Shown here one piece after another: positions 8,130 to 59,941 of a stretch of 64,000 nt of DNA. Source of the stretch: Octopus bimaculoides. Taxonomy: Eukaryota. A program made the translations under genes and the position numbers. The stretch lies in assembly GCF_001194135.2 (NCBI RefSeq), contig NC_068986.1, positions 64,816,247 through 64,880,246 of the forward strand, read 5' to 3'. The stretch's first letter is position 1; every line of letters starts with the position of its first letter. The notes below the pieces were generated by a model. It was not told where the DNA came from. It did not search any database and saw only the letters and a list, made by a program, of their open reading frames with translations.

Positions 8130-8853
8130 TTTTGCCAACAGTTCGATGGCTTTTTCTTTATATTTGATTCAGGCCTGCCCAAACTGAACTGCATTCATGA
8201 TGCCTCATTTTTGTTTCAGATATGTCAATATTACATAATACTTGAAAGAAAGGTATTTAAGATGGTCGGGTATTATTTGAATTTAGCTGCTATTTTTGCT
8301 GTCACTTTAGCTTGTAGTCAAGAATTTTGTATCGTAGCTACTCTCTCTCAGATATGTGAAGAGTACTCAAATGTGGAACTCCTTTTAATCATCATCATCA
8401 TCATTTAATGTCTGTTGTCCATGCTGGCATAGGTCACGTGGCTCGACCAGAGCTGCACCAGACTCCAGTCTGCCAACCACTTTACAAAGAGTACTGGGCG
8501 CTTTTAGGTGGCACTGCATGGGTGCTTTTACTCAACAAAATATTAACAAGCTATCAAGATGCAGATCTGGTTTTGCTATAAGTATGTATTCACAGATCAT
8601 CTAGACTGTGAGGCTTTAGTATTTGCAAAGTTTGTTATGTTTTAGTTATGTGCTGCTAATTGCAGGACCTGCAAAGGCCCTGACACAGCCCCTTCCTCCA
8701 AACCAAACCATTAAGAACAATGTGATGGTACACGAGGGAAGTATTTCCTTGATATGTGTAGTGTATTTAGGTGGGCCTTCTGAGACAAATGAGATCAATG
8801 TTAATATTTACCCATAACAGTTGTTGGTTAACAACTGCAGGAATATATATATA

Positions 8854-8995
8854 TGTTACACGTTCATATCTATGTGTATGCGTAGGTATACGTATATATG
8901 AATACATCCCCACTAGTAGTACTATTTTGTTAAGCGCATCTACTAAGCAGTATGAACTGTGTCTAAGGCAGATACGCACAGTGTGTATCACTCCG

Positions 8996-9037
<42 letters not shown>

Positions 9038-9135
9038 TGTTTGTAAACTTGCCAAGTAAATAAACATGTAGAATCATAATAATGCCTTCAGTGAGTTGTT
9101 TATTATCCCAACACGAACCAAAAGAATACATAACA
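8854..9135 (+). repeat. 5' LTR (282 bp)
   Basis: TGTTACACG...CATAACA; direct repeat of 12363-12615; contains (TA)20. Confidence 0.95.
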
Positions 9136-9146
9136 TGGTGGCAGTG
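9136..9146 (+). other. Primer-binding site, tRNA-Leu-like
   Basis: TGGTGGCAGTG immediately after the LTR CA; TGGTGGCAG is complementary to the 3' end of tRNA-Leu(AAG/UAG). Confidence 0.7.
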
Positions 9147-9258
9147 ATAAATACTTAATCGAAAACCATGCCTTTACAACAAAACAGGAACACAACAAAC
9201 CTGAAATTTAATAAACTGAATATCGCTTCGTCTTCGGACACACACACAAAGATCCGAA

Positions 9259-9986
9259 ATGGTGGCCCCTGTCGCCGTACTGATGAATCTACATCCGACC
9301 ATGAACTGTGACGGAGATGATATCATGGAAGCGTTCAAGAAATTCAAACAGGAAACTCAACTGGCTTTCAAAAGCTTCCTGAAAGGAACAACTACCGATG
9401 AAATGGTAAGCTACATCCTTTTATGGACAGGAGAGAAGGGCCTAGACCTATTCAATAGTTGGGATACGTCAGAATCAGATTGCAATAATTCAGACACACT
9501 TTTAGAGAAATTTGAAAGGCACCTAGAGCCCAGATCAAACCATAGAATTCATAGGTATGAATTCCAGGGCCTGAAACAAGACCCACAAAAAACGATTGAC
9601 AACTTCCTGTCCAGACAAAAGAATGTTGCCGAGAAATGCAGATTCAAAGACAAGGACGAAAGGATTGTTGATCAACTTATATGGAGGTGTGCTCATAAAG
9701 AAATCCAAAAATCCCTCATCGGTAAGGATGCTCTCCAATTGATAGAAGCAGTAGACACTGGAAGAGCATTCGAAGCCACTACCAAACAAATGGCCTCACT
9801 TTACAAACAAACACAATAGGCAGCAGTGTAGATATTTTATCTAGACATAGGACGAAACATACCCACAAATAGAGAACATGCCAGTACTGTGGTACAGAGT
9901 ATGAGTTCAATGACCGGAACAAATGTCCTGCATTCGGTACACACTGCAAAGCATGTGGAAAGCCCAACCATTGGGAAAAAATGTGT
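9259..9986 (+). pseudogene. gag: Gypsy gag with tandem zinc knuckles
   Basis: 186-aa ORF (FKKFKQE..LLWTGEKG..LLEKFERHLEP..QTIDNF..CRF..DERIVDQLI), stop at 9817, then CQYCG..CPAFGTHCKACGKPNHWEKMC at 9879-9986 in another frame. Confidence 0.85.
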
Positions 9987-10541: not shown

Positions 10542-11930
10542 TTGACAGAGATATGCCTATCAAAAACACCAGCCAGACTACAAAGGCTACTGTTGAGGCT
10601 CCAAAAATACGACTACAATATCAGATACAAGCCAGGAAAGGACCTGATATTGGCAGATGCTCCTTCCAGACTATCCTCACATGATAAACAGGAGATGGAA
10701 GGACTAAGTGTTAAGGTCCACCACATTGTAAATGTGACAAACACAAAGCTGGAACAAATCAAAGAAGAGACCAGCAAAGATGAAGAACTCCAGCTTCTTA
10801 CTCAGATGGTGATTCAGGGGTGGCCAGAGAAGAGGCATCAGGTGCAAACCCTCATTCATGAATATTGGGCCATCCATGATGACATATCAGTGGAGAATGG
10901 AATCCTGGTGGCTGGATAAATAGAAATTCTTGACAAGATCCACCAAGGGCATCTGAGAATGGAAAAATGCAAACTCCGAGTCAGCTGTATATTGGGTAGG
11001 TATGTACAAAGACATAGAAAAGATGGTTTTTACATGTCACATCTGTCAAAAGTACAGAAACTCACAACAAAATGAGGAAATGATATCCAGTGACATTCCA
11101 AGAAGGCCATGGCAAACTATTGGAATAGATCTGTTCACAGAGAACCAAGAATGATACTTGATTATGGTCTGTTACTACTCCAAATTCCCATTTGTGAGAA
11201 AAGTAAAAGATCTGAGAGCTAAAACAATAACTACAGTGGCTCGAGGACTTCTAGCAGAGCAAGGAATACCAGAGCAGATCATATGAGACAATGGAACCCA
11301 GTTCACATCTCAGGAATTCAAAAAGCTAGCTGATGAATATGGGTTCAACATTGTAACCTTAGCTCCACACTACCCCAAAGGTCATGGATCCATAGAAAGA
11401 CAGGTGCAGACAGTCAAGAGAACACAAGTCAAATGCCGAGAAACTAAGGAAGACCCACACCTGACATTTTTGTCCCTACAAGCAACACTACTGAGAGCTG
11501 ACATGAAATCTCCTGCAGAAATGCTGAATGGCAAGAAATACAAAACCATCTTGCCAACTAAGAACCAACCTCCTATTCACCAGGAAGAGACAAGAGCGAA
11601 GCTAGCAGCCACTCAAGAACAAGCACAGAAATATTACAACAAACATACACAATATTTACCTGNNNNNNNNNNNNNNNNNNNNNNNNNNNNNNNNNNNNNN
11701 NNNNNNNNNNNNNNNNNNNNNNNNNNNNNNNNNNNNNNNNNNNNNNNNNNNNNNNNNNNNNNNNNNNNNNNNNNNNNNNNCCTGAGATACTTGGAGGACT
11801 TCATGTGCATACTCAAGATCCTATAACTAAAACATGGATCCCAGCACAAGTTGTCAGTAGAGCTGAAACTCCAAGATCATACATTATAGAAACTGAATCT
11901 GGTAGGCAGCTGAGACGTAACAGGGCCCAC
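10542..11930 (+). pseudogene. pol: RNase H C-terminal tail plus integrase remnant
   Basis: PARLQRLLLRLQKYDYNIRYKPGKDLILADA; HQGH..CHIC zinc finger; PWQTIGIDLF..DNGTQFTSQEF..HYPKGHGSIERQVQTVK DDE core; TWIPAQVV..PRSYII..RRNR tail. Confidence 0.88.
11663..11780. other. Assembly gap inside the Gypsy integrase tail (probably zero or negative true length)
   Basis: Flanks overlap in cctg and join in frame as YLPEILGGLHV. Confidence 0.8.
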
Positions 11931-12353
11931 ATCCGCCCAAGGCTATCGAGGATAACATGCGCAACACCTGCAGCATCAGTGACAACACCAACAAGAACCA
12001 CAACACCCACAGCAGATGACAGCACAAACAGAATCCGTGTTTCCACAGAATCATCACCCCAACGGGCACCAACCACCCATCAACAGCCCAACGACACACC
12101 TCAGACACCAGTGCAGAGCACAAGATCCACCAGATGGAGACTGAACATTTTACCACCGATTCGATACCGTTAAAAGAAGAAAAAAAAACCAAAAAACTAT
12201 TTCTTCTAGATCAGGAAGCAGAAAACTATGTGTGTGGGCAGAATAATCTCACGGTTTCTGCTGCAGGATTGCCACCCTTGCGCTGACAAGCCATTAGTGT
12301 AAGGGAGATTACTTCTATTTTTTCATTGCCAAAATATCCTTTTTGTTTTTATC

Positions 12354-13787: not shown

Positions 13788-14822
13788 TTATATAACGCAA
13801 ACATCAACAAACCGTGGATTGTCTTGTCTTTCATCATGCACCGTGAAGCCTTGACCATTCCCTCCAGTTGTGTCTTTTTCTAACTGAGGGACACTAAGAC
13901 ACATTGGGCACAAATGATTCCTGATAGATGATGATCTCATCCACATAACCAAATTATGTCGGGTTCCAGATTCAATGGGAAGTGCTTCGTGCATCTGGCG
14001 ACCTCGATGAAGGATTCCATATCTTGGTGTGTTAGGATAGTGAAAAGTTGACGTTTCATACATTTCTGTGTTAAGTCCGCGGAAGTTCAAGCCACCCGCA
14101 CTAAATTCTTTACCAAGGCAAACATTCAGTGTTATTTCAGCATTGTCATAATGAGCACCAAGATTTCTATCTTGCCCGCAAGCATACTTCACAGTAAAAA
14201 CTCTATGAGAATCAAGACTACCACCTCCAAAATCGGGAAACAAGTAGCGTGTAATCCATGATAAATAATTAATTCTTAAAGGCTCCAGCAACTCCTTATC
14301 GAAACCTAATTCATCGAGCAGGCAACCGTTATTGTTCATTGTATTTGGTCGGCCTTTCGGTAAATCACTTCTTTCAAAATTTTCCAGTTCTCGGATGAAC
14401 ATGTCGCAAAACTCTTGCGTAAAAACAGGAAATGCATAGAGACGAAACGATTTATGTATAGTGATAGATTTTTTAACATCATCATTCATTCCTGCGTTCT
14501 TGCATAAGTAAACCAAATGCAAGAATTTTGGATCCAAATATGATTCTTTCAGAAAATAAATGCTTGGATGCAATGGTCTGTATCTGGATGAGATCAGTTG
14601 ACGTCGATGTAAAGCATTTTTACATATATCACGCCTTCTTTGTATTTCATCTTTTATCTCTTTAAATATTGATTCAAATTGTTCTTTAGAATTGCAACCC
14701 TTTTGTCGAAGTGTTTCACCGTAAAGAGTTTTAAACGAAGATTCATCTTTGAAAGTAACGTGCATCCCATATTTTCTTAGAAATATGTTACGGCTGTAGA
14801 AGCATGCACAATTGTAAAACAT
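13788..14822 (-). CDS. OGFOD2: 2-oxoglutarate/Fe(II)-dependent oxygenase domain-containing protein 2, single coding exon, 344 aa
   Basis: N-terminal CACFYSRNIFLRKYGMHVTF, RPNTMNNNG, HxD (AHYDNAEITLN), distal His and Arg (HRGRQMHEALPI..RHNLVMW), C-terminal CPMC. Uninterrupted ORF; AATAAA on the minus strand at 13663-13668. Confidence 0.92.
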   Translation of the reverse strand: MFYNCACFYSRNIFLRKYGMHVTFKDESSFKTLYGETLRQKGCNSKEQFESIFKEIKDEIQRRRDICKNALHRRQLISSRYRPLHPSIYFLKESYLDPKFLHLVYLCKNAGMNDDVKKSITIHKSFRLYAFPVFTQEFCDMFIRELENFERSDLPKGRPNTMNNNGCLLDELGFDKELLEPLRINYLSWITRYLFPDFGGGSLDSHRVFTVKYACGQDRNLGAHYDNAEITLNVCLGKEFSAGGLNFRGLNTEMYETSTFHYPNTPRYGILHRGRQMHEALPIESGTRHNLVMWMRSSSIRNHLCPMCLSVPQLEKDTTGGNGQGFTVHDERQDNPRFVDVCVI

Positions 14823-18900: not shown

Positions 18901-21900
18901 ATTTTGGTTAAGATCCAAATTTATTGATGAAAATATTTTTGGATAAAAATCTAAAACAAAATTAAACATGAAACCCTGACCGTGATTCACTTATTTACAT
19001 GCGTTAAAGATCAAAATAATTATTTCTCGTTTATTTGACGGGCGTGGCTGTATGGTAAGAAGTTTGCTTCCCAGCCACTTCGTTCAAGGTTCTGTTTCAC
19101 TGCTTGGCGCTTTGGCAAGTGTCTTCTATGGGGCCGAGCCGACCAAAACCTTGTGAGTGAATTTAGTAGATAGAAACTGAAAGAAGCCTGGTGTGTGTGT
19201 TCATGTCTCCTTGCCTTGACTTCAAGTGGTAACTGTAAACAAGTGTCACCATCAAGCAACTGGTGTCCTTTGTTTCCAATCTTCTGTGAAAACACGTCTG
19301 GTCAGGAGCAGATGTTACCTTACTTGGAAACAAGGTGAGGGTTGGCAATGAGAAGGCCATCTGACTGTAGAAAATCTTCACTATAAATTCTGTCCAACCA
19401 AGCATGGAAAAGTGGACGTTGAACTTATTATGATGGCATAAATCTGAAAATGTTATTACTTGTTGAAAACTCTTTGGATACTCTATATTTTCCCCCTCTG
19501 TATTGTACAATTAGATACCATCATGATGTTTTTCAGTTTTAATATTGTAGTATGTTTACATTAAGTGGTCTAGAGCAGTGGTGGTCCGCAGACAGGTGCC
19601 AGTCCACGAGCCATCAGCTACTGGTATGCGGCGAATTTCCAGAAAAGACAAACCTTATAAAATACTTATGTAATATTGTATTATTTGTTTACAAAATAAA
19701 TATAAGATTAAAAAATTGTCAGCTTTTATGTTCATTATATATATTTGTTTCCAGTATAAATTAATATTACTAAGAAATATTAGCAGTCCCTGGAACATTG
19801 GGAAAAAAAAAAATTGCTGGTATGCCACATCAGATAGTTTGAGAAGCACTGGTCTAGAGGATATTTTGAATTAGTTTTCTATAAATGTAATTTTTTTTTT
19901 TTTTTAAGGACAGTTGATTCAAAATCTTTTAGAATTCATTGTCATTAATACGAATTTTTTTCATGATTATGTGTAATTATTTTACTGACTTTGGTGTGGT
20001 TAAATGGAAAGTTAATTCTTATGGGATGCTGAGAAAATTCTAACTAACAGTATTAATTTCCCATTTGGTTCTAAATGAGAGCTAGTTCATTAGATTTTTT
20101 GGTTAGCCTGTTAGCAGAAGATAATTAACTCTCAAAAGCTCAATCACTTGTGTTAGCAGTGTGGACACTAATTGTTTACCATTTAAATTACCTTATCCAA
20201 AGAAGTCCATATCAATTTGTTTAACTTCCTTTAATATAAACAATTCTATAGAAATCGAGCCAATGGAGGAACCTCTGTGCAGTTGTTTGACTGGCTAGAA
20301 ATAAAAACCACTTCTTCAAATCACTCTCTCCCTTAACGGTTACATTCAACAATAATATGCAATAAGATTGGCTGGTTGCAGCTAAAATTCTTTTTAGCAT
20401 GAGGATGATGAGACGAAGCAACAACAATCTTTATGAATTTTTTTGTGTCAGAATTAACATTTAAGTAAACCTACAATTAATTCAAGTTTCTGCTGTTAGT
20501 ATCTCTGTGTAACTATTTATTGCAATGCTTGTTGCAGGCTAGGGGTACACCTCGTGATTCATTGCCACCAAAACCTCCTGTGAAGAGTGCACCTCCATTC
20601 AGCCGAATATTTGCCCTTCGTTTGCAACAGAAAGCATTACCTGTATCATTCCATAAAACAAACAACAGTATCCTTTTGATGTTTGCAGAAATTGTAGTTT
20701 TGTATGTGAGAACGTTTCAAAAGTCATTTTTCAACATCTGTAATACTAATGTAATAATATTACATACAATGTTTAGTTGTGCAAAGCTGTTTAGCATCTA
20801 TAATCTAGAAATGTATATTGTGGCTAGTTGTACACATGTTAACTGTTTAGTAGCTATAATACTGTTATTTCATATATTTTAGTTGTATGAATATTATATT
20901 TCTTTCGTATGTTCTGCTCTGTTTTTTATAAACTTTATCCTTTAAATTGAATACCTACAATTCTAACTTCAATTGTCATGTGTCAAATTAATCCTTGCAT
21001 GAAGAACTAGTTTCTGTCTACAAATAAACAGTGACCAGTTCTATTATTAGCATACATGTGAAATTCGTCAGTGGATATTAAGACTATATACTAATAGGTC
21101 ATGAGTTTGAATCTGTATCTATGGATAGAACAGCTTGTTCCAATTCTCAGCCAAAGGGACTGGATCATCTGGCAGTGTTGCTTGTAAATGATAGATTTGT
21201 AAACTTTCCGGGGGGAAGTGTTTTTCATCTGCTTCATGCTGTGAAATTGGAGTTAAGCACTTGATCCATAAAAACCCCTTTGGTCTCTCGAGATATTTTT
21301 GTTTTAGGAGAGCAGTGCAGTTGTAGTGTACAAGTAGAAGACTGAGCTGATGCACATGATCCAAGTAGGAGAAACCTGCAAAAGAAATAGGAAGTAGTAG
21401 TGAAAAGGGATCTCAGGAGGCCAATGCAGCTTGTAGGGATACTGTGTTGGAGAAGAGCCATGTACACATAGAAAAACATGTGAAACATGGATAATAACAA
21501 TAAATATTACGACACAGACAATCATGATTCCTGGGATACAGCATCGTCATTTTTATTCCTTTCTCCCCTTTTTTTTTGGTACTTACAGGCACTCAAGCAG
21601 TCCCTGAAAATATACCAATTCATTTTCGTTTATTTTTTGCTTATTTACTAGTTTGTTGAGAAAAATGCAGCTCTTACTACATATGGCTGTTTGTATCTTT
21701 CACATAATGTTTCAAGAACTGATTCCTTATCTTGTCTATCTTTACTAAATCCAAACTATGATGAACATAACAAGGAACCTTACTTCAATCAGTGCTTTGA
21801 GGTGGTCTCAAAGATTGGAGCTGGTTCATTTGGAGAGGTTAGTATTTTTACTTTACAGTAAAGCAAGAAAATTTGGGCATAAGAGGCATCAGATGTAGTG

Positions 21901-22340
21901 TGCACAAGAGAAGCCTGCCTTCGTATGGTCATGTGTATGGATGAAAACAGGTGCATATCATCATCATCATCCATCATTTTGAATTTGGGTTTTGTCCCTG
22001 TTAATGGGGGTGGCTGGATCTACCTCAATGCCATAGCAACCGCCCTTACACCACCTTGTCTGGTTTTGGGTGTCTTCCCTTCTTAAGCCAGTCCTCCCAA
22101 TCTCCTCCTCCACCTGTTCCCTCCACATTTTCCTCGGTCTATCTTGCTTTTGCTGTCCATTTACCTCATACTCTAGCATCCTCTTCAGAACATGCTCCTC
22201 ATCCCTCCTCAACACATACCCATACCACTGCACTCCGTTCCACTGATTCCTCCAACCCCAGCATCCCCATCAAGTCCTCAGTCCTCCTCTTATCAAACAG
22301 CCTCATGCCACACATTTCTCTCACCATTGCTCTGTCCTCA

Positions 22341-22373
<33 letters not shown>

Positions 22374-25300
22374 CCTCAAACACCATGTCTCACTCCCATA
22401 CAACATTACAGCTCTCACACCACTCCTACAGACCTTTCCTTTCGTCTTCAATGAGAACCAGTTCCCATATGACTATGCTCAACATTCCCTGAACTTCATC
22501 CAGCCAAGTCTTGCTCTTGCTGTCACAGCTGCTTTATATCCACCACTTAAATCCACCCTATTTCCCAAATAACAAAACCCTCTCACCATCTCCACCTCAT
22601 TGCATAGTGTTTCCCGCTCCTTTCTCACGTCTTCCACAAATAAACTCTCTTGCCAGTCTTGGGGTCACCGTCTTCATTTTCGTACATCTACCATGAATCC
22701 ATTTCTCATCTCGTACACAACGCATTTACCATTACCCTTCTCCCACATACACCACAATGATCCACCTTACTTACACTTCTCCTTCCAATCCACTCACCAT
22801 CACCTTTGTCTTCCTGGGGTTTACCTTCAAACCCTTGCTTTCAAACGCCTCCTTTCATTTCCAAAACTTCTTCCTCAATCCCTCCATCATCTCACTCATC
22901 AAAACAAGGTCATCTGCATACAGTATTTCCATTAGCAATCCCTCTCTTGCACTCTCTGTCACCATGTCAACCACTATTGCAAACAATAATGGTTACAACA
23001 CAGATCCCTGATGCACACCAACTTTCACCACCAACTCTTCCAACAGCTCTGATCCAATTCTCACTCTTGTCTTTACCTCCTCAAACAAACTCGTCACTGC
23101 TCTCACTGTTACCTCTAGTACACCTCTCTTCCTCAGTGCCCACTCAGTTGCCTTCCTTGGAACCCTAATCTGTACAATGAATACTGCATCTATTGTCCCC
23201 CTTCCTAGCATAAAACCAAATTGCATCTCATCCACATCCACCCCTTTCCGAATTTTCCTCTCCAACACCCTTTCCAATTACCTTCATTGCATGATCCAAT
23301 AACTTCAGTCCTCTATACACCTCACAACTCATCGCATCCCCCTTCCCCTTGAAGATCAGTACCACCACACTTAGTGCCTTATCATCTGGCATTCTTCTTC
23401 CATCCAGCATCCCCTGGCAGAGCTCCATCATCACAATAATCCCTGTCAGTTATCATTTCCACACTTACTTCTGATGGACCAGCTGCCTTTCCTATTTTCA
23501 TTTCCTTCATTGCTTCCACTACTTCTTCCCAACTAACCCTCTTCACTGGCCCCTTCACCACAGTAACTTCTACCCTCTGATCCCATTCATTCTCCTCATT
23601 CATAATTCCCTCCATATGCTCCTTCCAAACTCTTTCCCTGTCCTTCTCACTAAAATTCAACCTTCCATCACCCCACCTCATGCATCTTCCTCCCTCAACA
23701 TCTCTTCCATCATTTTTCATTGATTTAATAAACCTAAACGCTATCTGTGTTCTCATCCAGCCTGCTCAACCTCTCCTCAGCCTACTTCCTCATAGATATC
23801 ACAACCACCCTCTTTGCATGATTCTTTATGTCATTATACCTGGCTTTCATTTGCTCAGTCCTATTATTACATAAAGCTTTGTGCACCTCCTCCTTCCTCA
23901 CTATCGCATCCTTCACCTCCTTGTTCTACCACCATGTATCTCTTCGATCTCTCCTACCCTTCGTCCATCCACACACTTTGTCACATGCCTTTAGTACCCT
24001 TTCTTTAAAAGACTTCCACAAATCCAGTGCATCAGTGCTTACCAACTCCCCAACTCTCTCCTCAAACCTTGCTCTTGTTTCTTCCTTCAATTTCCACACC
24101 TTTCTCATCTCAATCGTACCCTTTCTTTTAACGCTTTTTAACTTTCCTTTTATCTGAGTCAGCAACGACCAACCTGTACTGCAACTCTCCTGGTATTGCC
24201 TTCACATTTCTTAGATATTTTCTGTTTTTCCTACCAACCAACACGAAATCACTCTCTATCTTATCTCCTTCACAGAAAGCCACCTTTTCTCTGTGTTCAT
24301 AAACTGCGTATTGGCCACACACAACTCTTTCTCATTACAAAACTCCAACAGCATTCTCCCTTCCAAACTTCTCTCCTCAATTCCATTTCCCAACATGTCC
24401 ATTTTTTTTTGGGGGGGGGGCAGTTGATTAGATCGACCCAGTACACAACTGATACTTAATTTATTGACCCTAAAAGGACAAAAGGCAGAGTCGACCTCGG
24501 CAGAATTTGAACTCAGAATGTAAAAACAGACGGTCATAATATACAAACATTTCTCATGGCACCAGTACACTGTTTACAGATGCTTACAATTTTTTATGTT
24601 TTCCGTGAATTTTTCACAGGTCCAGCTACTGTAAATGATGATGATGATGATGAAATTCTCTTACTGCTCTACTTCTCAGGTGTACAAAGTTCGGAGCAAA
24701 GCAGATGGTCAATACTATGCTGTTAAAAAGTCTAGAGAAGCATTTCGTGGAGAATCAGATCGGTAAGTTGCTCTTCATTACTGGAAGAACTTGCTCACCA
24801 TTGTTTCTTCTCTCCATCTCTCTCAGTTGTTACTAACAACAGTCTCTGTTTCTCTGAATTTGCTTCTTATAAAATACACATGTAATTAATCGTATTTGAT
24901 GAATCTTCATTCTCCTGCCATTACATTGTCTCACTGCTTAGATTCCTATAGTAAATGAATGTTGCAGTCTTTTTTTTACCCCAAACACCTTCATCTGGAA
25001 CTGCTTTTAGTTCATATTCTCCACCCCATTCAGCTTATTCTCTCTACAAATAATAAGTTATGGTTATCACCCCAATGTCCTGAAACTGATCAGTAATAAC
25101 ATCTAGGTTTCAGAGGGATAACTTACATCTTAAGGCTTGGAGATTAAAACCTAGCTGTAGATTTTATTACACTATGTATTGTTAGGATAATAAATTTCAT
25201 TGTTGTTGTGCTTCCGAATGCCAACTAATTTAATATGATGTAGAACTAGTTATTGTTCAATCAGGCAATTCAAGCATATGTGACCCAGGATCACATTCTA

Positions 25301-31155: not shown

Positions 31156-32744
31156 ACTTATACTATTTTATATAGAGATTGTTAACAATTAACAATACTC
31201 GTAAACAGGCAAGAATCGAAGTGCTCAAATTGAGCTAAGTTCCAATTTATAATTTGAGTAGAGGCAATACGAGTGGAAAACTAGAGGAATATGACCTATT
31301 ATCCAGCAGAATATCCAATATATATGCGTACTTTCTTCGACATTAATAGTGCAATATAAAGTTCGAATTAATAGAAATATTAAATGTCGAAGAAAGTACG
31401 AATATATATTGAATATTCTGCTGGATGGTCCTCTAGTGTTCCGCTTGTATTGCCTCCACTCAAATTTATCTATATATATATATATATATATAGCTGTAGA
31501 AACTCTGCCAAATCAGATTGGAGCCTGGTGTAGCCATCTGGTTTCACCAGTCCTCAGTCAAATCGTCCAACCCTTGCTAGCATGGGAAGCGGACGTTAAA
31601 CTATGATGATGATGATGATGATGTATGATGAGCTTCTTTCAGTTGCTGTCTACCACATCCACTTAGAAGGCTATTGTTGACCGGTGATCAAAGTAGAAGA
31701 CACTTGTCCAAAGTGCCACACAGTATGCTCCGATGGATGTGTAATGTCAGTGTGCATACTAGACAGAGTGTAAGTACCTTGAGAGAAAAGTTGAACTTAC
31801 GAAGCATCAGTTGTGGTGTGCAAGAGAGACGATTGCACTGGTATGGTCATGTAGGGAGAATGGATGAGGATAGCTGTGTGAAAACGTGTCACACCCTAGC
31901 AGTTGAGGGAACCTGTGGAAGAAGTAGGCCCAGGAAGACCTGGGATGAGGTGGCGAGGTACGACCTTCGAACATTGGGCCTCACCGAGGCGATGACTTCT
32001 GACCGAGACCTTTGGAAATATGCTGTGCATGAGAAGACCCGGCAAGCCAAGTGAGACCTAAATCCAAGGCCTCTGCCAGGGGTGTAGTCAGCCCACTTAT
32101 GCGTACCTTCCTCATTGGACACTAAACTCTGCTTGCAAAGACATGTTGAGGCAAGTGAAATTCAAATTGAACTAAATTCGATGACTGGCACCCATGCCAA
32201 CTTCGTCTCTCATTGGAGACTAAACTCGGCTTGCGAAGATCTATTGGGGCAAGCGAAATCATAACGGCNNNNNNNNNNNNNNNNNNNNNNNNNNNNNNNN
32301 NNNNNNNNNNNNNNNNNNNNNNNNNNNNNNNNNNNNNNNNNNNNNNNNNNNNNNNNNNNNNNNNNNNNNNNNNNNNNNNNNNNNNNNNNNNNNNNNNNNN
32401 NNNNNNNNNNNNNNNNNNNNNNNNNNNNNNNNNNNNNNNNNNNNNNNNNNNNNNNNNNNNNNNNNNNNNNNNNNNNNNNNNNNNNNNNNNNNNNNATATA
32501 TATGTGTATATATATGTATATATATAGGTATGTATATATATATATATATATATGTGTATATATATATGTATATATGTGTATATATATATGTATATATGTG
32601 TATATATATGTATATATATATATGTATATATGTGTATGTATATATGTGTATGTATATATATATATATGTATGTATATGTGTATGTATATGTATGTATATA
32701 TGTGTATGTACATGTATATATATATGTGTATGTATATATATGTG

Positions 32745-35700: not shown

Positions 35701-38700
35701 TTTCTATTAAACACAATCATGTCTGCTCTAATTGTCTATTTTTAGTTCAGGATTGGAAAGATAGTAAATAAAGCTATGATGATTGCAGTGTCTATTGTAG
35801 TATCTTTTATTAAGATATCTTTTCTTATTCATCTTGTTTGTTAGGGAGAGAGAGAAGGGATGATCAAATTTGCTTGGTGATATGATTCTGAATTTGATCC
35901 CATTGCATGGGACCTTAAGCAAATGTCTTTTATCAAGGCTTCTAGTTGATCCAATCCCCTTGTGAAATTGGGTAGGCAGAAACCCTGTAGAAACTTGACA
36001 GACTACATAGTCTTTAGTCATAGAGCTAATTTGTATCAAATTAATATCACCCCTGAACTTGGATCAGCTTTCTAGTCTATAGGTAACTTGATATTTTCCT
36101 ACTATGACATTCTATAGGCTTGTTTCTTCCACTTGTTGTGGAGGCTTTGGAAATGTCATGGGTGTTGCTCTTTCTCTCTGCTTTAGGGCTGAATCAGGAC
36201 ATGAAAATATTGTCAGTTGATAGCTATTTTCACCTCAATCAGGTATTGAACTACTAACATATTGAGAGTGTTTGAATTTGCTGGAGGTATCTTTTGATGT
36301 TGAAAACTTGTTAACTCTGCACACCTTAGTTCACTTTTGGCAAAGATATCTTCAATAATACATATTTTACTATGAAGAAGCAATCATTTCATTAGCTTAA
36401 GGTTACTAAGCTTTTTTGATACCAATCGACCTCTGATTCTGTCAAACAAAACTTAGTTCATTTAAAATGATCATGCTTAATTTAAATCTTTTTATCCTAA
36501 CCTTAACACTAATAACCTGTCATTATGTTCCAGCTTTATAATGAGAAAAAGTTATTAAATCTGTCCTTATATTTTTTATTGTTTTCAAATTTAATAGGCA
36601 CTCATAGGAAATGCTTTTCATTAGAGATATAATGAAAGGGTTAAACCAGGCCTAAACATTTACCATTCTAGGGTTTACAGTGTTTCTAAATCTCACTTTT
36701 ATTGTTCTTCATTTACCTGTTAATTTCTTATTACTTGAATTTTACTCTTGGTTTTTAAAAACCCTTTGACTCCATTCTTGTCTGGGCCTGTACAAGTGGG
36801 CTGTATGTAGAGAGGTGATAATCTTCCATTCTCTATAAGTTTTTCATTTTCTCACCTGTAGGTATCCAATGCTGTACATATAATGAATTCCATTATGGCT
36901 TTTCTGTTCATGTTGCTCACCTTAATATTTACTTATCCATTCTCAAAACTGCTTTACAAGGTGGTTTGCCCAGTAACATCACCTATGAATGCCACTAATC
37001 CAGAACTCAGCCTTGTAGACTATACTGTGTCAGATGGTAAGTTTATTGCTGATTTCATTATTTTATAATTATGCAACAATGTCCATTTTCTTTTGTTGGT
37101 TTGTCTTTGGTTGTGATTTTTAAGTTTTCTCTTGAATAGTTGTTAGTTAATAATTGCAATCAGGAAGGAGAATTCCAAAGGGCTAATATTCTGGGAAGAA
37201 AATACTGCGTGTAAATGGTTAGTGCTTCACTTACAAGAGTGAATATAGTGGAAGGTAAGAGGAGGAGAGATGAGTAAGTCAGGAGTGTTGGGGTAGACAA
37301 GGTGTGAAACCAATTAAGTCTGAGCAGTAGAGGCCATTTTAGCAGCTGTAGTAAAAGCAGAAATTCTTGATAGTACATCAGTGGACCAGAGGTTATGGTA
37401 TGTTAGCTAGCTACTTCCTGTTAATCAGTTGGTTGGGGGATGCAGCTTCTGGATATGCAGTTTAGGATGTCTATATGTACAGCAATTGCAGCACTACTTC
37501 AGATGTAAGAGTAGTGCTATATTGACATAAAAGGATGCAACTTAGAATTAAATATTACAAGGTACTTTTGTTCAGCCAACCCTTGCTCACACAGATTATG
37601 TGCTGTTTCTGTTTACTAAAATCTCACTTGCAAAGTATTGTTGAAGTAAAACTACACTAAAGGGTACTCTCCCAAAATGCTGCACAATGGGATTCAACCT
37701 GGATCACAATAGTTGCAAAGTGAACTTAGCCACACAGTTGATATTTAAATGTCTTAGTATAGCAAGTCATTAGTATTATAGTATTTAAGAAGCTGGCAGA
37801 ATCGTTTGCATGCCAGACAAAATGCTTAGTAGTGTTGTCTGTCTCTGTTCTGAGTTTAAATTCTGCTGAGGTTGACTTTGTCTTTCATCCTTCTGGAGTC
37901 AATAAAGTATGTACCAGTTGAGCACTGTGGTCAATGAAATCGACTAACCCCCACCCCGAAATTGCTGGCCTTGTGCCAAAACTTGAAACCAATATTATAG
38001 TATTTGACACTAATGAACTCTCAACAACCCAATGTGCATGTGAGTTGGATATTGTTGGCCGTTAAACTACAGGAGCATTGTAATATTGATAAATATTTCA
38101 CTAAGTTGTAGTTTAAGTCAGTCTGTGAAGAAGGATGAATTCTGTCAGAACCAGATTGAAGACTTTAGTATGTGATGAATTACAGGAATCACTGTCATCA
38201 ATTTTACAATAAAACTTTCTTCTTTCAAGCCAAGAAGTGAATCTGTAGATCAAGGTTTAGCAAGAAATGGACTTTATATATTTTTAAAAAATATTTCAAA
38301 TCCAGTGCATTTTCGTGCCATTCAGCAGTCAGTCAGCTAGTATTTTGTTACGATTTAATTTTTGCCTATATAAGCATTGTCAGTGATGTAAATGGTGGTG
38401 GGGATATTCTTATATGTAAGATTTGATATGATTTACTTTTAAGACAGTGACAAATGTAAAAAGAAATATCAAATCTGGATCACTATGAAAAATTACTGAT
38501 CCTTGTTCAAGACAATAATTCATCTTGTAACCAGAAGTGCTGCAGCTGTGACTATCCTCTCCCCTTTTTTTTATATCTGAGACTGATATACAAAAAGATG
38601 TGTTAATCATGGGCCTGCTCAATCAGGAACAAACTGGGATTAAACAACAACATCTTTGTTTACCATGTTAATATTCCCTTTTTATCTGTGGTTAATGTAG

Positions 38701-41700
38701 GGGATGATTTATTCATTTGTGGAAATATTGCTGGTGCTTTGTAGTTTTATAGTTGGACGAATGGAGTGAAAGTAGATTATATTTGTCAGCCAGGCAGACT
38801 GATTTAGAATATTATGTTCTTTTCTAGGAAGTACAGGATGATACGTTACAGCACTTATAATAACATGTGATGCCCTAATTGTGTAATTGTCTCTGATTGT
38901 ATATTATTTCCAAACTATTACTATCATCTAGTAGCTGGGTGGAATCATTAGTGTCGGGGGGGAAAAAATGTCCCCAATATCTGAGTATTTTGAGTGGTAC
39001 TTAGTAATGAATTCTAATTTTGGCATATGACCGCAATTATTAGAGACTGTAGAATCTATTGTAAAAATCATTTTACTGCCTGTCTTTGACTGGACACGAC
39101 AAGTATTGTTTATCTGTCTGGTGGCCTTAGTGAAATGGGTTGTGAAGCAGATAAGATTGTAAGGGTTGATAAAGTTTCATTTATAAAGGAAATTGAGGCT
39201 AAAGAAAGAAGTGCTGCATTCCAGCAAATTTGTTGAAAGGTGAGTGAGAGTGGCAAGGATGGTACAAGTGAACTGACTTGCTCTGAGCATGCACGTTTAG
39301 ATTGAGCAAAAAGAATGGGCGGGGAGGGCACTTACTTTAATGGTTAGAGTGACCATGGTTTTGTGGGGTTTCCATGAACACACCTCCTTGGAGAATTATT
39401 CATTGTTAAAATAATCTTGCTTCCTCATTGTTTTTGTTGTACATGTATAAACCCTCTGTATTTTTCCCATTATTTTATTAGTCTCTCTTGTATTGTTTTT
39501 ATGTAGGTCCTTGTAGCAAAAAAAAAAAATTATTTACGTTTGACGGATATTTGTCCTCATCTTGTTTGTTGTTAACACAACATTTCGGCTGATATACCTT
39601 CCAGCCTTCATCAGGTGTCCTGGGGGAAATTTCAAACCTGGGTTCTCATTCCTAACGTATTTTTCTAATGTAATTATTATTAATCAGGTCACTGCCTGGA
39701 ATCGGACTCGGAATCTTGAGGTTAGTAGCCTTAACCACTACACCGTATGCCCGTGGTGTAGTGGTTAAGAGCACAGGCTACTAACCCCAAGATTCCAAGT
39801 CCGATTCCATGCAGTGATCTGAATAATAATAAAAATACCTTAGGAATGAATGAGAACCCAGGTTCGAAATTTCCCCAGGGCACCTGATGAAGGCTGGAGA
39901 GTATATCAGCTGAAATGTTTACAACAAACAAGATGAGGACAAATATCCATCAAACGTAAATAATGTACATAATTCCTCATCTCTCAAATATAGAACTAAG
40001 ATTATTATTATTAATTATTCTTTGTATTCATTACCTGTGGTATGTTGTTTATAATTTCAGATGAAACCCTTGATGCTGATGTTTCAAGTGATTCTTATGG
40101 AGTTCCACTGGATAACTCTAATTCTGCAGAAAGCTGTTTTGAAGGTGATACTAGTGGTTGTGGTGCTTTTGATGAACCCGTTGATAACCAGTGTTTTGGG
40201 TAATTTTCAAACCTTATCTGCATTGAATTTATGTTGACACTGCTTAATCACAGGTCAGCTCCTACTGAGCAAACCTTTGATCAAAAGTATATCAAAAGCC
40301 ATGTCCATCCAATTTCTTTTTTCCAGATAGTGGACTTCATTATCCAATATGTCCCACCGCTTCTAAGAATATAAGCTGCAATCTGAGTGAGATCTAGCTG
40401 CTGTTTTTAGTGACTATATAAAGACCTCCTTGTTGCGTTGGCTTGCTGCTGCTGTTGTTATCAAACGGCTTTGTATAATAAATATGAATCACAGGATGGC
40501 TGTATTGTGAAGAAGCTTGCTTCCTAACCATGTGGTTTTGGTTATATACATATATATATATATGTACGAACAGCCATGCTACATGGCAGGGAAACATGGG
40601 CTGTGACTGCTGGGGACATGCGTAAGCTCGCAAGGAATGAAGCCAGTATGCTCCGCTGGATGTGTAATGTAAATGTGCATACCCGTCAGAGTGTAAGTAT
40701 CTTGAGAGAAAAGCTGAACATAAGAAGCGTCAGTAGTGGTGTGCAAGAGAGACGATTGCGCTGGTTTGGACATGTGGTGAGAATGAATGAGGATAGCTGC
40801 GTGAAAAAGTGCCACTCCCTAACAGTTGAGGGAACCCGTGGAAGAGGTAGGCCCAGGAAGACCTGGGCTGAGGTGGTGAGGCAAGACCNNNNNNNNNNNN
40901 NNNNNNNNNNNNNNNNNNNNNNNNNNNNNNNNNNNNNNNNNNNNNNNNNNNNNNNNNNNNNNNNNNNNNNNNNNNNNNNNNNNNNNNNNNNNNNNNNNNN
41001 NNNNNNNNNNNNNNNNNNNNNNNNNNNACCCTCTACACTCTCTGAGTGGTTGGCGTTAGGAAGGGCATCCAGCTGTAGAAACTCTGCCAAATTAGATTGG
41101 AGCCTGGTGTAGCCATCCGGTTGCACCAGTCCTCAGTCAAATCGTCCAACCCATGCTAGCATGGAAAGCGGACGTTAAACGATGATGATGATATATATAT
41201 ATATATAATATACGTATGTGCAGGCATGGCTGTGTGATAAGAAGCTTGCTTCCCACTCACATAATCCCAAGTTTAGTCCCACTGTGTTATTTCTTTACTA
41301 CCCACAAGGGGCTACACACAGAGGAGACAGACAAACGGATTAAGTCGATTACATCGACCCCAGTGCGTAACTGGTACTTATTTAATCGACCCTGAAAGGA
41401 TGAAAGGCAAAGTCGACCTCGGCGGAATTTGAACTCGGAACGTAGCGGCAGATGAAATACTGCTAAGCATTTCGCCCGGCTTGCTAATGTTTCTGCCAGC
41501 TCGCCGCCTGTGTGGCACCTTAGGCAAGTGTCTTCTACTATAGATTTGGGTCAGCCAAAACCTTGTGAGTAGATTGAGTAGACAGAAACTGAAAGAAATT
41601 CGTTTATATATTTGTATATTTGGTATTTGTGTGTGTCTGTTTTCCCCCTCCCCCATCACTCACAAACGGTGTTGGTGTGTTTACATACCCGTAACTTAGC

Positions 41701-44700
41701 ATTTCGGCAAAAGAAACAGATAGAATAACGGGGTTGATTTGTCCAATTAAAGCCCCTTCAAGATGGTGCTCCAGCATGATCGCAGTCAGATGATTGAAAC
41801 TAAAGAATATATGTGTGTGTGTGTCTGTGTTTGAGAGTACACTTGTCTTTACCTCGTATTATGATTGTAAATGAGAATCATCATCATAGAAGCAATGTTA
41901 TTTGTTTCCAGTCTTCCATGAAAAACATGTCTGACTGTGGGAAAATATTTCTTTACCTGGAAACAGGTGAGGGTTGGTAGCCGAAAGGGCATCTGGGCAT
42001 AGAAAATTTGCCTCAATGAAATCCATCTGAACCATGTGAGTAAACTTCTTAATGACATGAACTTGACAGAAGAACGTATTGCATTAAATTCAACAGACAA
42101 GTGAATCAATGGCTAGCAGTAGCCATAAACTTAGTGTTGTATGTAACAGTGTTATACCTAATATTAGTTGTTGTATTTCACCTATTTAGTTGCTGTGTTA
42201 TCGTTTGTAATTGTAGTATTATACCTAACTATATAGTTGTGGTGCTTTACCTAATTATACAGTTGAAATTTTACAGTGTCGTATCTATTCTACAGTTGCA
42301 GTGTTGTACCTTACCATATAGTTGCAGTTGGGTCAAATATATTTTACCACATTGGATTTTACAGGTACAGAGAAGTGTGTGACATCTCATATATGTAGAA
42401 TCAAGTGTCTTATAGTGATATCATTATCTGACACTTATCAGACATAGCTATAAGGTTGAGCTGTTGATATCTTCATATACTTTGCTCTATAGATATCCAT
42501 AAGTATCTTTAACTATACTGTAGTTAGTTCACATTGGCTATCAGTTGTAAGTGTATTACAATGTATTTTTATGTTACTAATTATGTTTTTGTTTCATGAT
42601 TCATGTTGCTCTTCTTGTTTCAATGTTGTTAATCTTTGTATTTCATGTTTTTAAGCTCTTGTTTTTTGTGTGTTTAAACTCTTGTTTAAGCTATGTGCTG
42701 TTAATTCCTATTTCATGTTCTATATTGCTATTTCCCACTCACCACTTTGATAAATCCTATACTCTACATTGCTAGATCTGTGTTCCCTGTTGCTGGTCTC
42801 TGAAACCAATGTTTCTATTCCTTGCTAACGTCTACGTTTTACATTTGTTATTTCTTGTGTGCGATAATTCAGACTCCTGGATTTAGCTTTGTTAATCTCC
42901 ATTTCATATTGCTAATCCCAGTGTTTTGATCTCTTATTTGGTTTGTTACTTTTCCAGGCAGAATCATAAGCAAAAAGCATACACAACTCCAATACTTCAC
43001 CGAAAGAGGATGTTATTTCACAATTCCTCAAAGTCAGCATCTCCAGGTTTCCCACGGAAGTTGGATCTTGTGTAAGTCTAATTCCTACACATTTTTGTAA
43101 ATGTTGCATTTGCTGAATGGAAAAGTTGTCTTTGGTGAACAGCTGTATACCTATTGCAGTAACATGATGCTACATTGTTTAGTTATATCAGTGACTGTTA
43201 TATAAAGATTATTGTTATTGAGGTGTTTGAATGCAAAGTGGTTATAAGTTTCTTGAATAATGATAATTCCTTTCCTTTGCTCAGTGGGGCGTAGCTGAGG
43301 TCTTTAGATCTGAGTTGTTTTTCAGAGCCAAACATAATGAATGAGAGAAGTTGGGTGAAATGGGTTATTAAAGTTATATTTCTGACCTAAATATTATTTA
43401 ATTCAAAGCTGTACCATTGTACTATAGTCTTCGGACAAAAGTTTTCTTAGTTCAATCTAAATGAGCTGCTAAATAAGATGTTCTTTACTGGTAGTTAGTT
43501 ATTTTTGTGAAAAGGAGTCTGGTTGACATTCACATAGATTACTTGTATATTTTTCAGGCTTGTTTAAACCTATGATAAAACTAAAATCTGAATTTAGACG
43601 TTTTAAAAGGAAGTGATGCCTGAGTCATGGTTGGGTAAATGTTTGTTAGCTTCTTGACTGAATGCCTGACAGTTCGTATCCTGTGGCCATCATTGTAATT
43701 TGTTCTTAAACAAATTCATCTAGCTGTTGATAAGATTTTTTTTTTCTCTTTCTGTAAGTGGTGCTCACCTTGTAGCAAGCATACATAGTGTATCATTGGT
43801 TTGCAGCATTGAGTGTAAATGCTCTCATGGCCTCAGGGTAGGATAAGAAATTTGTGCACGTGTATTCTCCTTTGAGTCACTACACAATAGATTTGGGCAG
43901 ATTTTTGCTTTTGTGATATTTATTTATTTTTTTTTTTTCTCATCCTTATTTTTAGGTCTTCTTCATCACCAAAACCTGTTAATACTGTAATGGAGGGTGA
44001 CGGCAAGGAAAACCGACCAGCCACACCAGTTATGCTACTTGATGAAGTACGGCCAATTGAGCCAAGAAACTTACTTGGGGCAAGTGTTTTATCATACCAT
44101 TTGATAATATTGATAGCTTGGGTTATTGACAAGTTAAGTGTTTTGGTTTGTATTGTTGCTGTTATAAGGAAATATATATTTATAGACTAGTGCTATATGG
44201 CAGATTATAGGTTGCTGGTGATAGAAGTTCACCAGCCATGTTTGATTAACCATAGCTAGAATGTGACATGTCTCAGTTCCTTAAGCTAAATGCCTACTTG
44301 AAGAAGGCATCAGGTAATCACTCCTGTGATTCTGGTCCTTCCTAATAGCCATAAATGCTATCAAATTAACATAGTTGACAGAACTTTGGATAGAATTCCT
44401 TGCAGTATTTGTTCTGGCTAACTGAGCTCTAAGTTCAAATCTTGCTGTGGTCAACTTTACCTTTCGTTCTTTCAGGGATAAATAGCAGGTGGTGGATTTG
44501 TAGAATTGTTATATTATTTTGTTCATTCCGTTATGACTCACTTGGTATGAAAGATCTGCATAGAAGAGCTTTTTGGCTTTACTGTGATAAGAGGTTGTAA
44601 AATTCGTTTTTGGAGTATTCTCAGAAGCTATTGATGGTGAAAGTGTTTAATTTCCTCTTGTTTCACAGCTGAGTTTCAGTAGATATAATGATACCTTTAA

Positions 44701-59233: not shown

Positions 59234-59941
59234 NNNNNNNNNNNNNNNNNNNNNNNNNNNNNNNNNNNNNNNNNNNNNNNNNNNNNNNNNNNNNNNNNNN
59301 NNNNNNNNNNNNNNNNNNNNNNNNNNNNNNNNNNNNNNNNNNNNNNNNNNNNNNNNNNNNNNNNNNNNNNNNNNNNNNNNNNNNNNNNNNNNNNNNNNNN
59401 NNNNNNNNNNNNNNNNNNNNNNNNNNNNNNNNNNNNNNNNNNNNNNNNNNNNNNNNNNNNNNNNNNNNNNNNNNNNNNNNNNNNNNNNNNNNNNNNNNNN
59501 NNNNNNNNNNNNNNNNNNNNNNNNNNNNNNNNNNNNNNNNNNNNNNNNNNNNNNNNNNNNNNNNNNNNNNNNNNNNNNNNNNNNNNNNNNNNNNNNNNNN
59601 NNNNNNNNNNNNNNNNNNNNNNNNNNNNNNNNNNNNNNNNNNNNNNNNNNNNNNNNNNNNNNNNNNNNNNNNNNNNNNNNNNNNNNNNNNNNNNNNNNNN
59701 NNNNNNNNNNNNNNNNNNNNNNNNNNNNNNNNNNNNNNNNNNNNNNNNNNNNNNNNNNNNNNNNNNNNNNNNNNNNNNNNNNNNNNNNNNNNNNNNNNNN
59801 NNNNNNNNNNNNNNNNNNNNNNNNNNNNNNNNNNNNNNNNNNNNNNNNNNNNNNNNNNNNNNNNNNNNNNNNNNNNNNNNNNNNNNNNNNNNNNNNNNNN
59901 NNNNNNNNNNNNNNNNNNNNNNNNNNNNNNNNNNNNNNNNN
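59234..59941. other. Assembly gap
   Basis: Run of N, followed by (CA)n to about 60000. Confidence 1.

Follow-up and report, generated by a model that had tools for sequence, protein, structure and literature searches.

Intron 2 of the Octopus bimaculoides Myt1 (PKMYT1) gene, at positions 20668–21739 of the + strand, is with a probability of about 85% an ancient, positionally conserved U12-type intron whose 3' terminal G has mutated to T, so that it carries GT-AT termini. The initial annotation had proposed a U12-type intron ending in AT at this place. In support of that proposal, the peptide that the AT junction produces is part of the RefSeq protein in O. bimaculoides and in O. sinensis, and U12-type introns with GT-AG termini occupy the orthologous position in seven other animals. 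The host gene encodes a Cdk1-inhibitory kinase of G2/M and oocyte arrest.

The Myt1 gene and its second intron

All positions refer to the window, the whole 64,000-nucleotide stretch of DNA that was analysed, which belongs to chromosome CM046606.1 of assembly GCA_001194135.2 and agrees with it at every one of 35,575 compared bases. The Myt1 coding sequence extends from 15925 to 47499 on the + strand in 16 exons separated by 15 introns, and translates exactly to the 545-aa RefSeq protein. A protein assembled from the + strand open frames was 100% identical over its full length to the O. bimaculoides RefSeq isoforms X1 and X2 (RefSeq matches XP_014779409.1, XP_052824793.1 and XP_014779412.1), which are named membrane-associated tyrosine- and threonine-specific cdc2-inhibitory kinase. 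Matches to this query carry the protein kinase families PF00069/PF07714, and Myt1 proteins of other animals share 51–95% identity with the octopus protein (51–73% for those named Myt1 across metazoans); the host gene was found to be both a kinase gene and an orthologue of Myt1.

When the protein was mapped exactly onto the genome, 13 introns proved to be GT-AG, one (the last) GC-AG and one, intron 2, GT-AT. The other 14 introns have ordinary U2-type, GTAAGT-like donors and AG acceptors. O. sinensis and O. vulgaris share the GC-AG termini of this last intron (44080–47466, ggg/GCAAGT...), which is GT-AG in Argonauta and in the remaining species that were mapped.

Exon 2 (20538–20667, + strand) ends with the residues PVSFHKTNN plus one further base, and the intron that follows is phase 1, because the exon stops after the first base of a codon. 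Directly abutting the exon, at 20668–20677, stands GTATCCTTTT, of which the first nine bases, GTATCCTTT (20668–20676), match the U12-type 5' splice site RTATCCTTT at nine of nine positions, exactly at the exon boundary. Towards the other end of the 1,072-nt intron, TTCCTTATC at 21723–21731 agrees with the branch-site consensus TTCCTTAAC at eight of nine positions, carrying a T where the consensus has an A, and places the putative branch A at 21729. This TCCTTAAC-like motif falls within the distance of about 10–15 nt upstream of the 3' splice site that characterizes U12 introns (optimum 11–13 nt), close to its lower limit: from the branch A to the last base of the intron is 10 nt. The intron ends in AT at 21738–21739, and exon 3 (21740–21837), which opens the kinase domain, begins at the next base in the exon mapping of the RefSeq protein. 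The AG dinucleotides nearest to this end are at 21650/51, 21659/60, 21669/70 and 21715/16, and the next one (21773/74) already lies inside the kinase exon. The initial annotation had described the U12 5' site, the branch motif, the AT and AC ends and the lack of any AG between 21716 and the exon, and each of these was found where it had been placed. Pyrimidine content at −23 to −4 of the intron is 0.70, compared with 0.60–0.90 in the U2 introns of the gene; the branch motif fills much of this stretch.

The sequence RTATCCTTT is not enriched in the window, where it occurs twice against 2.09 occurrences expected from shuffled sequence. Its only other match is ATATCCTTT at 12334–12342 (+), where no + strand gene was identified; TTCCTTA occurs four times on the + strand. 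Counting such motifs was rejected as evidence, and because the 5' motif taken by itself is no commoner than expected by chance, the case rests on position and on comparison. What goes beyond chance is placement: the 5' motif stands exactly at a phase-1 boundary and is followed, 10 nt short of an in-frame end, by a branch-like motif, an arrangement that is repeated at the orthologous position in seven other animals. The four assembly gaps in the window, at 11663–11780 (118 bases), 32269–32495 (227), 40889–41027 (139) and 59234–59941 (708), do not touch intron 2.

Several neighbouring features were recorded in passing. Within intron 3, the + strand of 22000–24500 is rich in C and poor in G (GC skew −0.62) with long stop-free frames, and it contains a − strand open reading frame (23382–23756) whose peptide appears to resemble the start of LINE reverse transcriptases; the stretch is probably an antisense retroelement insertion. 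Related + strand fragments at 31632–32051 and 40528–40887 look like copies of a repeated retroelement tail. Both lie near gaps (32269–32495 and 40889–41027, the second directly adjoining), and a Pfam search on them gave no match. An Rfam scan of the window likewise returned no match. On the − strand, 13925–14822 holds the end of a neighbouring gene, which the contig annotation labels OGFOD2-like (PF25238).

Exon 12 (36862–37036) contains an internal acceptor at 36960/36961 (ctttacaag/GTGGTT), which RefSeq isoform X2 (512 aa) uses. The X2 protein thereby lacks 33 residues that form a hydrophobic stretch, probably the membrane anchor of Myt1. A matching long and short pair, of 537 and 504 aa (P0132 and P0130), appears in presumed transcript contigs of another cephalopod, and since the pair recurs there, a soluble Myt1 isoform may be conserved.

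Choice of the splice junction

Reading frame was no arbiter of the junction, because five conceivable splice solutions are all in frame. By conceptual translation, the GT-AT intron yields ...NNTLLNPNYD in a protein of 545 aa and a GT-AC intron yields ...NNINPNYD in one of 543 aa. Among solutions with canonical termini, joining the GT at 20668 to the AG at 21669–21670 adds 23 aa, and joining the GTGAGA donor at 20706–20707 to the AG at 21650/51 adds 42 aa, the same insertions that the initial annotation had calculated.

Only one of these introns is compatible with the annotated protein. Exact mapping of XP_014779409.1/XP_052824793.1 allowed a single intron 2, from 20668 to 21739, GT...AT and phase 1; the RefSeq models are computational, and the junction is read here from the protein-to-genome mapping. 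RefSeq has carried the AT junction from its earliest annotation of O. bimaculoides onwards. We assume that Gnomon required transcript evidence before it admitted an intron of non-consensus type. In O. sinensis, the RefSeq protein XP_029638082.1 shares the AT-junction peptide, with an intron that runs from ATATCCTTTT to TTCCTTATCTTGTCTAT and is therefore AT-AT. A protein search with the exon 2–4 peptide for junction-spanning Octopus transcript fragments returned three candidates, none of them from a cephalopod. In Logan contigs from another cephalopod (P0004, P0130 and P0132; 2.1–4.6 kb), the whole protein is encoded without introns, in the short form that lacks any insertion at this junction; these contigs are presumably transcripts.

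Alignment of the nucleotide sequences placed the octopus AT directly on the AG of Argonauta: ...CTTGT (gap of three positions) CTAT/CT in Octopus stands opposite ...CTTGTTTGCTAG/CT, so that a terminal T takes the place of the ancestral G. The AT junction also preserves the spacing seen in lophotrochozoans, which consists of the split codon, five residues and Y-D.

The same U12-type intron could instead be cleaved mainly at the in-frame AC at 21744–21745, which lies 16 nt past the branch A, or at both AT and AC to give isoforms two residues apart. Such use would be favoured by the conservation of the AC in both O. sinensis and O. vulgaris, and by the report that U12 introns are error-prone in their choice of 3' site (PMC3584512); the AC may serve as a minor 3' site. 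As the main or a joint site it is improbable. The RefSeq models of two species use AT and no annotated protein uses AC, GT-AC is a disfavoured combination of termini (PMC3584512), and Argonauta has no AC at this place. Cleavage at AC would moreover delete two residues from a spacing that is conserved in all lophotrochozoan orthologues.

We regard as still less likely, and indeed as highly unlikely, that the true intron is a canonical GT-AG one of U2 type and that Myt1 carries an insertion of 19, 23 or 42 aa (from GT 20702/AG 21716, GT 20668/AG 21670 or GT 20706/AG 21651, respectively). All three pairs are in frame in O. bimaculoides, and the first is of the type used in the O. vulgaris annotation CAI9723760.1. 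However, the insertion occurs in no orthologue, whether in Argonauta, in the Logan contigs that lack introns or elsewhere; the canonical acceptors lack good pyrimidine tracts; and O. sinensis and O. vulgaris have AA in place of the AG at 21669/70 and AT in place of the GT at 20668. The stretch that these pairs would make coding diverges at about 10 times the exon rate, as an intron would. Between O. bimaculoides and O. sinensis, identity is 226/228 in the exons and 107/119 in the 119 nt upstream of the branch motif, and it returns to 20/20 from the branch motif to the AT; the same comparison including O. vulgaris gave 100% identity for 21720–21739 and 90% for the 119 nt upstream. A canonical intron would leave the perfectly conserved U12 5' site and branch site unexplained. 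The AG at 21715/16 was rejected as an acceptor for donor 20668, with which it is out of frame, and it lies upstream of the branch motif.

A sequencing or assembly error at 21739, with a true G and hence an ordinary GT-AG U12 intron, is the reading to which we give the least credence. Its sole support is the ancestral GT-AG state, which all outgroups show, whereas T is present in the chromosome-level O. bimaculoides sequence and in the independent assemblies of O. sinensis and O. vulgaris, with the surrounding 20 nt identical in all three. Since three concordant assemblies, from three Octopus species, share the T, it is not an assembly error, which settles the doubt between T and G that the initial annotation had left at this base. 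RNA editing that restores an AG was also rejected, as A-to-I editing cannot turn a terminal T into a G.

Orthologous introns and the octopod series of termini

Introns of phase 1 with GT-AG termini were identified at the position of octopus intron 2 in seven other animals. In Argonauta the intron starts with GTATCCTTTT and runs from branch site to 3' end as TTCCTTACCTTGTTTGCTAG. The corresponding sequences are GTATCCATTC and TTCCTTGACCAGAACCTAG in Haliotis, GTATCCTTTC and AACCTTAATATTTCCACAG in Mytilus, GTATCCTTTC and GTCCTTAACCAGACTTTCTCAG in the chiton Liolophura, GTATCCTTTG and TTCCTTACTACCCTCTTCCAG in the brachiopod Lingula, GTATCCTTTG and TTCTTTAACATTGCCGTTAG in the hemichordate Ptychodera, and GTATCCTTTT and TACCTTGACTAAATGTTCAAG in the sea anemone Actinia. 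All seven have a GTATCC donor and a TCCTTAAC-like branch site, with the branch A about 11–15 nt from the AG, compared with 10 nt in Octopus. The position matches exactly in Argonauta, Haliotis, Mytilus, Liolophura and Lingula, whose genes are of the molluscan and lophotrochozoan kind in which the initial annotation had suggested looking for the same phase-1 intron; in Ptychodera and Actinia, where the alignment contains gaps, it agrees to within a few residues. The octopus intron was thus found to have positional orthologues of U12 type. Actinia served as the cnidarian orthologue, the Acropora record being an intron-free metatranscriptome contig.

The Myt1 gene of a gecko, the one vertebrate checked, has no intron at this position. 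Because the intron is present in Actinia and absent from the gecko, it predates the split between cnidarians and bilaterians, so that Myt1 has had a minor-spliceosome intron since before that split, and was lost in at least one vertebrate. The predicted minor-spliceosome control of Myt1 is in this sense ancestral in animals and not an octopus novelty.

Within the octopods, three combinations of termini were observed: Argonauta has GT-AG, O. bimaculoides has GT-AT, and both O. sinensis and O. vulgaris, in which the 5' site of intron 2 is ATATCCTTT, have AT-AT. Most parsimoniously, GT-AG would have changed to GT-AT on the stem branch of the genus Octopus, together with a 3-nt shortening of the distance from the branch site to the 3' end, and GT-AT would then have changed to AT-AT in the O. 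sinensis/O. vulgaris lineage by a G-to-A substitution at +1.

These changes resemble the switching of U12 introns between the AT-AC and GT-AG subtypes (Burge et al. 1998; Sheth et al. 2006, Table 3; Turunen et al. 2013) in that the termini change and the 5' and branch sites are kept. They differ from the usual switching in that the octopod series passes through a 3' terminal T rather than through AT-AG or GT-AC, and no AT-AC end state was seen. By the division of minor introns into A-type and G-type classes (PMC8280824), the AT-AT introns of O. sinensis and O. vulgaris are A-type and the GT-AT intron of O. bimaculoides is G-type. We tentatively suggest, at slightly less than even odds, that the octopod intron is midway through a switch from G-type to A-type by way of a 3' terminal T, with every state productively spliced.

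Minor splicing of Myt1

GT-AT U12 introns are a known, rare and well-described class. Four are recorded in human and three in mouse, together with six AT-AT introns in each species (Sheth et al., PMC1557818). Mutational work, as cited in the same paper, describes GT-AT and AT-AN termini as competent for splicing and less efficient than GT-AG and AT-AC. Non-canonical termini are similarly reported to be tolerated at lower efficiency, with an optimal distance of 11–13 nt between branch site and 3' splice site (Turunen et al., PMC3584512). Among conserved animal minor introns, about 3.8% have non-canonical termini, of which AT-AT is the second most common type; that survey included Octopus sinensis, which keeps most human minor introns (PMC10639083).

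The closest parallels are the human and mouse introns in DEADC1 and SLC24A6 (Sheth et al. 2006, PMC1557818), which, like the octopus intron, combine RTATCC, a TCCTTAAC-like branch site near the 3' end and a terminal AT. A first and last nucleotide pair of G and T supports U12 splicing experimentally (Dietrich et al. 2005, as cited in PMC1557818). In contrast to these introns, the octopus case lies in Myt1 and in a mollusc, and its non-canonical state is young, occurring within the sampled taxa in no genus but Octopus; sister Octopus species already differ from O. bimaculoides in being AT-AT, whereas the human and mouse GT-AT examples stay GT-AT. A search of the accessible literature for Myt1 or PKMYT1 together with a U12 intron retrieved no paper linking the two. 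The octopus intron does not overturn current understanding of this class.

The features of the sequence, its orthology, the termini in four octopod genomes and the match with the RefSeq proteins are observed; that the junction is used in RNA, that the minor spliceosome is required and that expression may be affected is what we infer. The steps proposed here rest on what is generally established about U12 splicing. The rigid 5' site GTATCCTTT would be paired by U11 and afterwards by U6atac, and U12 would pair with TTCCTTATC, bulging the A at 21729. The point of 3' cleavage would be set mainly by the short branch distance of 10 nt and not by an AG with a polypyrimidine tract; because the distance sets the site, the A-N dinucleotide at 21738–39 would be the one used. 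The exons would then be joined as ...AAC AAC A/CT TTA CTA... (N N T L L). Retention of intron 2 introduces a stop at 20880, after 71 extra codons and upstream of the kinase domain. Since a retained intron ends translation before that domain, efficient minor splicing would be needed for Myt1.

For genome annotation the gain is practical, as intron 2 defeats gene finders restricted to canonical termini. The initial annotation had anticipated such errors, and one was found in O. vulgaris: the non-RefSeq protein CAI9723760.1 (564 aa) is forced onto a GT-AG pair and gains 19 residues, with DNA as in O. sinensis. On OX597819.1 (locus L003), the model replaces the AT-AT intron at 8246–9726 with a GT-AG intron at 8280–9703, a choice that is probably an annotation error. 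In O. bimaculoides, the original UniProt models A0A0L8GNU2, GNU9, GNI8, GPM7, GNK8 and GNX3 lack the N-terminal exons, and the four whose sequences were read start at Met157, a defect that may have a cause other than intron 2.

The intron is ancient, and Myt1 output may for that reason depend on minor splicing in most invertebrates. In human cells, G-type and A-type minor introns do not rely on CENATAC to the same degree (de Wolf et al. 2021, PMC8280824), and cell-cycle regulators, the category to which Myt1 belongs, are reported to be enriched among A-type introns (PMC8280824); any link between CENATAC and cephalopods would be one of analogy. The three octopod dinucleotide states amount to a small natural experiment on the compatibility of first and last nucleotides and on the switching of U12 subtypes. 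If the suggested G-type to A-type switch is true, a terminal U would act as a bridge state that fits either G or A at +1, subtype switching would have a viable route around the disfavoured AT-AG and GT-AC combinations, and a cell-cycle kinase would shift between two functionally distinct classes of minor intron in sister species.
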